This document shows positions 17,970-57,640 of a stretch of DNA of 64,000 nucleotides, one piece after another (positions within the stretch are counted from its first letter, which is position 1; each line of letters opens with the position of its first letter). Under the pieces are notes generated by a model. The model was not told the DNA's origin and did not search any database. It saw nothing but the letters and a program-made list of their open reading frames with translations. The stretch is from Saccostrea cucullata (Eukaryota). The stretch is from NCBI RefSeq assembly GCF_032062105.1, contig NW_026929567.1:186001-250000 (forward strand). Direction: 5' to 3'. A program made the translations under genes and the position numbers.

Positions 17970-19256
17970 TCAATTCCATCTAGAAGTCAATTTCCAATAT
18001 TTAGTAACTTCATCGGCATAGATGTCATGTTGTTCGGTAATTAAATGCAATGGGCATCTAAAAATCCTGTCCACTTTTGCGAAGTAATTTTCTGATAAGA
18101 AATGGTCCTTGATATCCATGGCAATAACGTTTTCTTTGTCCATTCGACATCTGAAACCTCTTACAAAACATGCTTTTCTGCCATCTGTTCCCGTTAAATC
18201 ACTTAAGATATTCTCTATTGTTCTTTGAATGCTATAAGTTTTTATCCTTTTCAAAATATGTCCTCGCACTGTACAAAATACCTGAAGTTGAATAGTTTCT
18301 GTTGTGACGGATACAAGGATAAAGTATTTCATATTCGAAAACAAAACAGCATTTTTGTATAGACAATATGTGCCCCTATTTTTCATTATTTTCCAATTCT
18401 CTTCCATGCAAGCGACAACAAGGCGAAAAAACACGAAATATGGCAAGTATTGATACCGATAAATGAGAATAGATGATTTTTTTTTAGCATTTTTTATGAA
18501 ACATTGAACTTCTTTTTCCATGTGTCTCCTGTTCATACATGGAATATAGTAGGATTCTTTACCTATAGCAAACAGGCCGATTTTTTTCATGAATTTGAAA
18601 AGACATGTCTTATGATAAATTAGACATCGAGTATCAGACTCATACAAATCAGTTTTAATTTCGCTGTCATCCCTCTGGTCTTCTTTTAATTGCTTGTACA
18701 TAGTCCCATCGATACACCTCCAGATCTCTGTCAGAAGTCGATCTTGCAGTATTCCAGTGTTGTGAAATTCATCCCAGTCACTCTGAACTACTTCAAGGGT
18801 TCTTAAGGTAAGCTTGTTGGAGATTATATGTTTCAGAGCATCAAAAAACCACTGAACGTCAAGAATGATATGTTCTTGAAGACATTTTTCATTATAAAAA
18901 AGAATCTTTCTTGTATCATGATAAAATTGTAACATATCAATGTTTGTCACCATTGCATGTTCATGGTTTTCTTGTTCTATGTCTACTTCTGGAATATTTT
19001 TTGTTACTTCTTCTCTGTCTAAAATTCTTACTTTGTGTTTTTTATGATTAATTTCTATTTCAAAGTCAACCCATTCCATTGGAATGTTTTCCCTCCATCG
19101 CTGATTCAACGCTATGTCATAAATACACCCTTTTAGATCCTTGGACAGTGGAACACTAAGATCTGTGCAAAAAAAGGCATCCTTTCTAATGTACTGTGAT
19201 AAATTCGACGATCCATGTAGGCGTTGCTTTAGAGCGTACAAAAGTCCAAATTCATC
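17970..19256 (-). CDS. Last exon of Roc-COR (ROCO-family) GTPase gene: end of Roc plus COR domain, 428 aa plus stop
   Basis: Acceptor ttgttgcag|GAT at 19256 (phase 0), open to TGA at 17970. COR-like motifs WRENIPMEWVDFE, LQFYHDTRKILFY, IILDVQWF, YYIPCM, LPYFVFFRLVVAC, LYKNAVLF. No kinase domain follows. Confidence 0.88.
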   Translation of the reverse strand, partial: DEFGLLYALKQRLHGSSNLSQYIRKDAFFCTDLSVPLSKDLKGCIYDIALNQRWRENIPMEWVDFEIEINHKKHKVRILDREEVTKNIPEVDIEQENHEHAMVTNIDMLQFYHDTRKILFYNEKCLQEHIILDVQWFFDALKHIISNKLTLRTLEVVQSDWDEFHNTGILQDRLLTEIWRCIDGTMYKQLKEDQRDDSEIKTDLYESDTRCLIYHKTCLFKFMKKIGLFAIGKESYYIPCMNRRHMEKEVQCFIKNAKKKSSILIYRYQYLPYFVFFRLVVACMEENWKIMKNRGTYCLYKNAVLFSNMKYFILVSVTTETIQLQVFCTVRGHILKRIKTYSIQRTIENILSDLTGTDGRKACFVRGFRCRMDKENVIAMDIKDHFLSENYFAKVDRIFRCPLHLITEQHDIYADEVTKYWKLTSRWN

Positions 19257-20124
19257 CTGCAACAACAATTTTTTTCACAATGTTTACTTTTTTCTGTGTT
19301 TATTCAAACAGATTTAACTGCAAAAGATATAAAAAAAACAATTTAAACAAATTTTAACCAACTACTGGCAATTAAGAAAACATGTGTTCCCCCAATAAAG
19401 GTAAAAAGAGTCAAATGTTTGGATTCTATGACCCCCCCCCCACCCCCCACTCTTATCATCATTTAGGAAATTCTCTCTACTTTCAGATCCTGTACAAGTT
19501 TGAGCTTATTAATCGGTTATAAATAGATTTTACGTTTAAAAGACATTCGTGACTTTTTGAAAATAACGCAAATTTCCAAAACAGGGATAATTTTCCCGAC
19601 GATAGGCAATTTTTTTTCTTGATAAAATCGTTTCAGTAAAATTGATATTTTTAAAATGGATATTTTCTCTACTTTTGCAAAAAAAATTGTAAAAACAAGA
19701 ATTTTTCTTCCACACGTTTCATTTTGCTGGTTTTTATTCCTTCCATTTAAATTAAACGCCGTTTTACTTGCATTTTTTTTTATTGAAATAGGAAAAACAA
19801 AACACAGCTTGTAAAAGTGAAGAAAATTTTCATTTCAACAATCCTTAACTTGTCTCTTTATTTTCAGTATTTTCTGAATTACCATAGTTTGAATTTTGAA
19901 CTTCCGCGACCTTTTTTGTAGAAAATTCTAGTGTAGACAATATCTAACGTCAATGTCGTTTTCGTTTCGCCTCATTCGGAACAACATGATTGTTTTATTA
20001 CATTTAATTATTTATTTTTATTTATATAGAGGTTTTATGAAAAAAATTAGGATTTTTAGGATTTTCCATATTATAAGCGGGGATTTGGTGGAACAATTTG
20101 ATATTATTTATTAACGAAAGACAT

Positions 20125-21692
20125 TGATGTTTTCGTTCCGGGTCTTTTTCCCTATTATTATTTTTTTTTTCTTACCGATTTTGTGCACGCTAGTTCTCGG
20201 AAATGGCTCGACCGATTTTCACCAAACTTTCAGATCTGATAAATATTTATCTGAACCTTGTCGGAAATTTTCGTCGTCGATGACGTCACTTCCTGTCGTG
20301 AGATATGGATGATTTTCAAATTTTAAGAGGGTGGGTTTGACCTGGAAACTACTCCGGAACGACTTAAATTATTGACTCAAGATTTTAAGTGAAAGTAAGG
20401 GAAGGTTTGCTGAGTTGCAGGCAGGCGTCCAAATTTTCATAGCGCAAAAGGCGCCGAAGCTCGGTGGAGCCCAAAAAATGTGTCGGAAACATCTCACAAA
20501 AGTTGACATCTTTGTTTTATATCTTCGTGTCTATTCATAATTTGTTAAAACATATAGAAGAAAAGTTGTACTGATTCACATGACCATTCATATGGAATCA
20601 GGAAAAGGGGCTGACCCCTCAAATTAGGGGCTCAGAAGGGCCAAAACTCTTTCATTTATATTTCTTTATTAATCAATATTTTGTTACACATTACAGAAGC
20701 AAAGATATTCATTGTAACAATTTGCAACAATATATTGTAAAATTTTTATCATATGTTATGTAATAAGGGGTCACAAGGGGCCAGAATGTCACATCTTTGA
20801 CGCTTTATATCTAAAAAAAAAAGGGGGGATATTTTGATAAGCAATATTGAACAAAAGATGATCAGAATAATGTTCTTAATAGTATGCATACTGTGATTTT
20901 TTTTTTAAATGGCCCCATTAACAACGTGCAGGCATAGCCCCTAAATATTTCCATTCAGCATATCTCCACAACGGAAAAAAATCTTTGAATTAGCGATGAA
21001 CAAAAAGTCTTTGAATTTAAAAGCCCTTTCATTTGACATCAAGAAAAAGGGACTGACTCTTTAAAAAAGGGGCTCAGAGGGGCCAAAAGTCTTTTATCTA
21101 TTACTTTTCAATCTATATTTTGTAATACATTACTGATTAAAAGGTATTCATCTTAGCGAATTGCAACAACATCGTATAAATTTTTAATCATATATTACGA
21201 AATTAGGGGTCACAAGGGGCCAGAATATGAAGTGTTGTCGGTTTTTATCTCGAATAGGAGAAATATTTTGATAAACAATGTTGAACAAAGGATGGTCAGA
21301 ATAATGTTCCAAAGAATATGCACCGTTTAAATTATTATAAAATTGCCCCATTAAGGACTTGGATTGGTGGCCCCTAAATATTTTCATGCAAGATATCTCT
21401 TTAACGAAAAGACATATGTGAATAGGTCTTGAACAAAAAGTGTTTAAAATCACGAGACCTTTCATTTGAAATCAAGAAAAGGGTCTGGTCCCTCAAATTA
21501 GGGGCCGAGATGGGCCAAATCACTAAATATCTAAAATTATTTGAGATTGTCGAATAAATCAAAAGAATTTAATCAAGTGAATGAAGTCTAACATTATTTT
21601 GTAACAAAAGTCATAGTCAAAATTATATCTCATTTTATCGTAAAATCGGACGGAAGACCTACTAGTTGCTCGCAACGAGATCTCATCTAGTT
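20125..21692. mobile_element. Helentron-like element with internal repeats of about 430 bp (intronic)
   Basis: About 20600-21030 repeats at about 21040-21470. Ends CGGAAGACCTACTAGTTGCTCGCAACGAGATCTCATCTAGTT. Confidence 0.6.
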
Positions 21693-57166: not shown

Positions 57167-57401
57167 CAAAAGAATAGATTTCCTCGGCACACACTTCAAC
57201 AAACTTCCGATGATGGTTATTTAATAGACAGTGATATTTGAACTTATTTGGTTCCGTACAATTCTGTCTTTGCGCGAGGGCCCCACATCTTCTGATCTTT
57301 GATCTTTTGTCAGTATCTTCTTTTGTTGATGGACAAGATTGAACAAAGTCCATTGTTCTAGCAGACCATATACAAGCTTTTGCTAATAAGCACATGTAGC
57401 C
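57167..57401 (-). CDS. Cys-rich ectodomain-like exon (C..SARTMDFVQSCP...C...C...YHC..N....EVCA)
   Basis: ttttgaag|GGC acceptor and G|gtaaaa donor. The Cys spacing matches an uncharacterised extracellular module I recall from many oyster membrane proteins (not searched). Confidence 0.8.
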
Positions 57402-57587
57402 CTTCAAAATAAAAAAAGAACATGCTCTTTAATTTTCAAAGTTTCTGATGAATCCTATTTCTCATAGGCGTACACATTGTTATAGATATACACCACGGAT
57501 AAAGTTCTTTGACATCGGTTTCCCTCGATAAGATAACTTTTGTTCAAATATTTAATTTCCTTTTAAATTGAATCAAGTTTGACTTAC

Positions 57588-57640
57588 ATAGTACACTACA
57601 AACAATGGCTGAACAAAAGCAAGAATTATAAAGTAGTTAC
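57588..57640 (-). CDS. Candidate signal-peptide exon (NYFIILAFVQPLFVVYY)
   Basis: Perfect donor TAT|gtaagt at 57588, phase 0 into exon 57401, hydrophobic. However there is an in-frame TAA just upstream and no ATG, so the 5' boundary is unresolved. Confidence 0.45.

Follow-up and report, generated by a model that had tools for sequence, protein, structure and literature searches.

Roco GTPases, of which LRRK2 is medically important, have been studied as cytoplasmic switches, and the control of their monomer-dimer and GTP cycle is debated. A 64-kb stretch of DNA from the oyster Saccostrea cucullata (contig NW_026929567.1, here C11704, positions 186001-250000; referred to below as the window) raises the question of whether a Roc-COR GTPase is encoded behind an extracellular domain and a membrane helix, that is, whether a Roco of receptor type is present. 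On the minus strand, nine exons (E0-E8; all exon coordinates are window positions) were located between 57629 and 17970. On balance, they appear to form a single gene belonging to a family of type-I membrane proteins that is specific to oysters, heavily expanded, and equipped with a Roc-COR GTPase on the cytoplasmic side. Exon structure and relatives of the gene, both as read from sequence, support the receptor-type architecture, and the locus is interpreted as a receptor-type Roco, either a compact one or one that has recently decayed.

Exon structure of the candidate receptor-type Roco gene

As deduced from reading frames and splice sites, the nine exons compose one continuous, phase-consistent frame of about 828 codons with canonical splice sites. 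The encoded order comprises a hydrophobic leader, a cysteine (Cys)-rich ectodomain of about 150 residues, one membrane helix, approximately 40 linker residues, Roc, and COR. All nine exons are open, and their motifs and splice sites are intact. Exons were searched singly, joined exons being used only in a local frame check and in estimating identity for two Roc exon translations placed end to end; the predicted folds refer to natural database proteins of a paralog, not to the conceptual product of the window. In the original prediction, a block of leader and Cys-rich exons (block A) and a block of four Roc-COR exons (block B) had been proposed, and all of these exons were recovered from the minus strand, bordered by AG/GT splice sites. 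The proposal that both blocks belong to one transcript held in part: a single phase-consistent frame was obtained via an added membrane exon, but RNA junctions were not observed, and expression was close to zero. A direct junction from 47363 to 36428, as had been envisaged, is out of frame and reaches a stop after seven codons.

The added membrane-helix exon, E4 (42584-42687, minus strand; acceptor aaatag, donor gtatgc), enters in phase 2 and leaves in phase 1, and these phases match its flanks, E3 leaving phase 2 and E5 needing phase 1; alternative in-phase donors are located at 42596 and 42593. Its translation contains some 24 hydrophobic residues and then RRKR and CC (basic stop-transfer, positive-inside), representing, by the hydropathy rule, a single membrane helix whose cytoplasmic end is flanked by positive charges. 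A hydropathy scan at a threshold of 2.3 passed over E4, which was then found by tblastn using the membrane exon of the neighbouring paralog P0186 (see below); it was the best match to this exon (42674-42597), and the neighbour's exon features the same phases and occupies a collinear position. When both strands of the window (128 kb) were scanned for a pyrimidine-rich AG acceptor, entry in phase 2, a hydrophobic 19-mer preceding a basic cluster, and a GT donor in phase 1, the E4 site alone was returned. The E4 region is single-copy in the genome. Hence, the earlier remark that no clean transmembrane exon could be identified between 36.8 and 47.3 kb no longer applies. A weak tblastn match at 55957-56097 to a membrane segment was rejected, because it is not hydrophobic. 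In the intron just downstream of E4, a tandem repeat with a period of 156 nt was observed (41613-42316), and a related repeat is located just downstream of the paralog's membrane exon.

The ectodomain is encoded on the minus strand by three exons. E1 (57167-57401; phase 0 to 1, AG/GT sites) is the first Cys-rich exon; E2 (56954-57070; phase 1 to 1, donor gtgagt) is homologous to residues ~94-131 of P0186; and E3 (47363-47447; phase 1 to 2, donor gtaagt), carrying the last Cys and the glycosylated stalk, matched P0186 residues 133-161 in tblastn. Following the leader, these exons encode 10 Cys and four N-x-S/T sequons, consistent with an extracellular domain and with the module of about 10 Cys, sequons, and a stalk that had been predicted for block A. 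The DNA identity to the P0186 gene amounts to 71-72% for E1 and E2 and to 76% for E3, whose last residue coincides with that of the paralog's exon 3, directly ahead of the paralog's membrane exon.

For E1, at least 150 scored family copies (449 candidates) were detected in the S. cucullata genome, and the exon keeps all 12 invariant columns of the corresponding alignment A1 (C, CP, C, Q.C, F.YHC, and E.C positions). The A1 profile, built from 23 copies, matched 995 proteins, most of them 200-420 aa long and composed of a signal peptide, a two-part Cys-rich domain, a stalk, a membrane helix, and a short tail. In some proteins with the same ectodomain, the cytoplasmic part carries an nSTAND3 NTPase, in certain cases accompanied by ankyrin repeats; the profile search with the Cys module thus confirmed that the ectodomain is joined to different intracellular modules, Roc-COR being another of them, as had been suggested earlier. 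For the ectodomain of P0186, a small alpha/beta domain was predicted with a predicted local distance difference test (pLDDT) value of 86 overall and above 90 over residues 21-110. A Foldseek search of this ectodomain against the PDB, in which the folded model included the leader and the membrane helix, returned no match with E <2, and in the VIA-align rows the membrane helix alone was matched. In the ESM Atlas, mollusc-only clusters were matched, some of them with nSTAND3.

The cytoplasmic part is encoded by four minus-strand exons that are mutually in phase and possess canonical splice sites, no Roc-COR RNA junction having been seen. E5 (36180-36428; phase 1 to 1) carries the P-loop GCAGAGKT and shares 83% DNA identity with the paralog; the acceptor at which it starts is conserved and lies midway in a conserved segment, and the sole in-frame Met of the exon is placed directly at the P-loop. 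E6 (26722-26961; phase 1 to 1) contributes the switch II motif DFGGQ, and E7 (24536-24663; phase 1 to 0, donor gtaaat), the last Roc exon, contains the motif ATHWEE. E8 (17970-19256) represents the COR exon, with 428 codons and a stop located where the homologs end. Searching with Saccostrea Roc-COR proteins ('pats1-like', 630-736 aa) by tblastn yielded collinear minus-strand matches at 36402-36178, 26959-26723, 24664-24506, and 19259-17988, and together with the in-phase splice sites these matches corroborated block B as four Roc-COR exons.

Both the P-loop (G1) and the DxxGQ motif (G3) of Roc are present, and E6 as a single exon reached 26.6 bits for Pfam Roc versus a cut-off of 27 bits; full-length homologs that are 71-77% identical in the Roc exons scored between 39 and 40 bits. 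COR follows next to Roc, E8 matching Pfam COR-A at E 1.5e-5 with 25.4 bits, below the gathering score of 35.3. The same exon matched PF16095-bearing Saccostrea proteins at E 1e-124, and the homolog P0007 passes the COR-A cut-off with 38.8 bits. The P-loop exon family comprises at least 150 scored copies of 509 candidates in the genome. Identities to paralogs of about 71% for Roc and 48% for COR are in the normal range for this family. The nearest paralog of E8 is 50% identical, and E8 is embedded in an intact open frame of 434 codons. Since its 428-codon COR frame has stayed open despite approximately 50% divergence, it is considered to have evolved under constraint.

Neighbouring paralog, oyster relatives and the cassette ahead of Roc

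The closest point of comparison is the neighbouring gene LOC134281245 (protein P0186; C11704:89983-124303), located about 62 kb away from the window on the same strand of the same contig. Every exon type is present in it, among them a membrane exon and an additional cassette, and collinear DNA homology between both genes was found for E1-E3 and E5-E7. The two genes agree in exon order and in the phases of the membrane and P-loop exons. The neighbour's P-loop exon ends at a GC donor instead of GT, and its RefSeq model then ends in a short alternative tail. P0186 (698 aa) and a second protein of the same genome, P0023 (837 aa), both comprise a signal peptide, the Cys module, a membrane helix, a region of approximately 400 residues, and the Roc P-loop; a contig look-up for P0023 returned no encoding contig on record.

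Among the 116 models of the family (S. cucullata, S. echinata, and Ostrea edulis), approximately 25 feature a membrane helix near the N-terminus, before the Roc P-loop, 15 of them matching the Cys-module profile. Wherever the N-termini of such models were inspected, a Cys-rich region precedes the helix, being either of the window's type or of a related second type. Several relatives are full length (1250-1370 aa) and include Roc and COR, as represented by RefSeq models in S. cucullata and Ostrea edulis, and S. echinata contributes a further membrane-helix Roc-COR family model, P0210. The homologs uniting Cys-rich ectodomain, membrane helix, and Roc-COR that the original prediction called for are thus available as RefSeq models from three oysters, P0186 and P0023 among them. 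The window gene shares with P0186, P0023, P0167, P0169, P0193, P0215, P0216, and P0223 the Roc-COR exon family, the same or a related Cys-rich ectodomain, and the single membrane helix. At the level of contigs, a Cys exon was found 20-70 kb upstream of a same-strand Roc-COR gene on at least eight contigs (counted by eye from match lists).

The relatives differ from the window copy in possessing an ATG leader and a cassette of about 400 residues, encoded by three large exons between the membrane helix and the Roc P-loop exon, both of which are missing from the window copy. The cassette exons are 55-70% conserved among most relatives and readily detectable. Nevertheless, tblastn with 279 proteins at E values up to 1 returned no match other than E3 (at the upper edge) between 36.4 and 47.3 kb on the minus strand, and no cassette exon in the remainder of the window. 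Taken as a unit, the cassette is of phase 1-1, and its absence keeps the frame because, in the window gene and in the neighbour alike, the membrane exon exits in phase 1 and the P-loop exon enters in phase 1. An AlphaFold model of the cassette reached a pLDDT of 87, and weak Foldseek matches to RPC62 and PadR winged-helix proteins point to predicted tandem winged-helix-like domains. Neither Pfam nor PDB sequence searches matched the cassette, and an identity as DED plus TRADD-N found no support in Pfam, PDB sequence, or Foldseek searches, no TRADD-N profile being among those run.

Start codon, transcription and competing explanations

Several observations weigh against reading the locus as one intact receptor-type gene, beginning with its 5' end. 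The leader-like exon E0 (57588-57629, minus strand; 14 codons, donor gtaagt, phase 0) contains a hydrophobic core, but its first codon is ATA, not ATG, and an in-frame TAA is located four codons upstream. The leader exon anticipated for block A was therefore recovered as a hydrophobic 14-codon exon with a donor, but a signal peptide with an initiator Met was not found at E0. Like the signal-peptide exon of P0186, E0 comprises 14 codons, and it is separated from exon 1 by a comparable distance (187 versus ~180 nt); the two exons align poorly at the DNA level. Nearby, the search for an alternative ATG leader returned none that was convincing; a weak candidate at 61007-60972 consists of 12 hydrophobic codons with a weak donor. 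In addition, no family member besides the window copy was seen to lack the cassette, leaving the compact form without precedent, and the relatives' RefSeq models are gene predictions.

The same direction is indicated by transcription and by the databases. Mapping of three raw oligo-dT runs and one contig run to 36150-41600 resulted in a depth of only ~1-2 reads on the P-loop exon E5 in three libraries, and at this depth neither a junction nor a loose end at 36428 was listed over the interval. The intron bin 36514-36695 had zero depth, and the thin coverage of E5 next to it is therefore compatible with an internal spliced exon. Database proteins bearing the window's COR exon were not found in the range of 238-756 aa, nor were proteins with an ectodomain close to that of the window in the range of 384-1221 aa, where a search with the P0186 ectodomain returned P0186 alone. 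Probably, RefSeq holds no coding model at this locus. High RNA depth within 36150-41600 was confined to repeat fragments (36862-37020, 38592-38733, 39243-39604, and 41428-41600), which were covered very deeply on both strands and yielded numerous chimeric joints. The 36.9-39.6 kb fragments recur as tandem copies in the neighbour's introns (C11704:103.8-104.6 kb and 112.4-113.3 kb).

It is unlikely that the locus represents a working minimal receptor-type Roco, in which a disulfide-rich ectodomain would be linked directly to Roc-COR through one helix and about 40 residues, so that pairing of ectodomains by a ligand would gate the dimerisation-dependent GTPase cycle at the membrane, as a member of a diversified oyster repertoire combining the same ectodomain with Roc-COR or STAND NTPases. 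A serious, if doubtful, alternative is that the locus is a relic, descended from a full-length gene resembling the neighbour, which has lost cassette and start codon and persists as a barely transcribed pseudogene whose exons have not yet acquired stops. This would agree with the ATA at the position of the neighbour's initiator ATG and the in-frame stop upstream, with the missing of cassette exons that are otherwise conserved and easily detected, with the recent long terminal repeat (LTR) retrotransposon and other repeats in the introns, with the near absence of RNA, and with the lack of a database protein model. However, nine open exons with intact splice sites and motifs are retained, and as COR has diverged by about 50% from every paralog with 428 codons free of stops, the decay would have to be very recent. 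Furthermore, loss of the cassette preserves the frame, insertions into introns do not by themselves disable a gene, and the three libraries may lack the expressing tissue or condition.

It is quite unlikely that E0-E4 and E5-E8 are separate units, the former being one of the common small Cys-rich membrane proteins (signal peptide, Cys module, helix, and short tail) and the latter an independent, 5'-truncated Roc-COR copy located downstream by chance. Most of the 995 Cys-module proteins are indeed 200-420 aa long and end soon after the membrane helix; the frame would close about 24 codons further on if the E4 donor were unused; and both families are very large, so that chance neighbours are conceivable. 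On the other hand, the phase leaving E4 equals that entering E5, and the neighbour shows the same order, strand, and collinear exons joined by RefSeq. Block B alone would also be without a sensible start, because the sole in-frame Met of E5 stands at the P-loop, and the recurrence of this arrangement, a Cys exon preceding a same-strand Roc-COR gene by 20-70 kb, on at least eight contigs (by eye) argues in the same sense. Finally, the membrane exon or the whole arrangement could have arisen by chance or as an assembly artefact, as AT-rich introns contain many short open frames and several paralog matches are identical on different contigs of this assembly of 23,869 contigs. Such an explanation is regarded as highly improbable, given that the 64-kb window contains zero N gaps, the E4 region is single-copy, the scan of 128 kb returned no other candidate, and the gene is collinear with its neighbour.

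Relation to known systems and further features of the window

Compared with the ROCO proteins (LRRK1/2, DAPK1, MFHAS1, the Dictyostelium Rocos, and the Chlorobium tepidum Roco), the window gene shares the tandem order of Roc and COR, an intact P-loop and DxxGQ motif, and COR as the expected dimerisation device. It differs from them in featuring no leucine-rich repeats (LRR), ankyrin, kinase, or death domain, and in the placement of Roc about 40 residues past a membrane helix and behind an extracellular Cys-rich domain, whereas characterised ROCOs are soluble and cytoplasmic. For bacterial Roco and LRRK2, it is established that Roc-COR passes through a monomer-dimer and GTP cycle. In the mechanism proposed for the receptor-type Roco, the ectodomain would bind a ligand or surface outside the cell, clustering or a change in conformation would be relayed to the membrane-proximal Roc-COR, and the monomer-dimer and GTP cycle could then serve as the switch, as in bacterial Roco and LRRK2. 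Output would presumably be achieved by recruiting other proteins, because the gene model lacks a kinase or any other effector domain. For an immune role and for ligand-controlled dimerisation, these considerations allow at most an inference.

That known ROCOs are cytosolic, as had been assumed earlier, applies to the characterised, soluble members but is too strong as a general statement, since Toll-like receptor (TLR)-type proteins with ROC-COR have been modelled in silico in Aplysia (PMC9334734). These proteins resemble the window gene in representing a mollusc transmembrane receptor architecture that includes Roc-COR; they differ in having an LRR ectodomain and a TIR domain, while the window gene encodes a small disulfide-rich domain and no TIR. 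In Crassostrea virginica, an expansion of proteins comprising a Cys-rich ectodomain, a membrane helix, DED, TRADD-N, and a variable C-terminus was described (Kaur et al., eLife 2021, PMC8195603). As far as the accessible text of that report goes, it is alike in placing a constant Cys-rich ectodomain and helix on interchangeable modules of immune or apoptosis type, with STAND NTPases among the partners, and it differs in that Roc-COR is not among the partners listed there; the likeness is one of architecture. DED or TRADD-N exons were not detected in the window, no TRADD-N profile being among those run. In the literature on Roc-COR and ROCO proteins in bivalves and oysters, no description of a Cys-rich ectodomain combined with a membrane helix and Roc-COR was found.

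If the receptor-type reading is correct, a Roc-COR placed behind an ectodomain and a single helix would make it possible to test, in a simple setting, whether the cycle is driven by enforced dimerisation. Oysters have hundreds of Roc-COR genes, and in about one fifth of the models an ectodomain and a membrane helix are present. Together with the joining of the same ectodomain to STAND NTPases, these observations extend to Roc-COR what has been published on modular, lineage-specific receptor repertoires in bivalves.

Among the other features of the window, an LTR retrotransposon of 7.7 kb (47941-55570, approximate ends; minus strand) resides in the intron between E2 and E3 (56954 to 47447), in the same orientation as the gene and outside the coding model. 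The compared 300-nt segments of its LTRs are 100% and 99% identical. Its long open reading frame encodes gag (SCAN and the zinc knuckle zf-CCHC), integrase, and reverse transcriptase, whereas RNase H is read from the next frame; the integrase is located upstream of the reverse transcriptase, though the domains are of the Ty3/gypsy type. A short repeat occurs in three minus-strand copies (35379-35672, 44654-44893, and ~56600-56840) with a similar open frame starting with MESPP or METPP. One of its copies lies directly downstream of E2, and the copy at 35379-35672 had no Pfam match. The plus-strand open frame at 38111-38347 resembles the C-terminal end of a Tc1/mariner-type transposase, without a Pfam match at E 0.001, and no tRNA was found in the 64-kb window.

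RefSeq proteins of S. cucullata matched the genome at 99-100% identity. Many paralog matches were identical on two or three contigs (for instance, C1334/C22917 and C5215/C18329/C21966), and the 1.17 Gb assembly of 23,869 contigs probably holds duplicate haplotype contigs. For the exons of the window gene itself, no identical second copy was seen on another contig. Downstream of the gene, very weak tblastn similarity to COR regions of the family (E 0.03-1) was detected at 703-885, 3131-3292, and 7444-7695 on the minus strand, which could represent remnants of another copy or chance matches.

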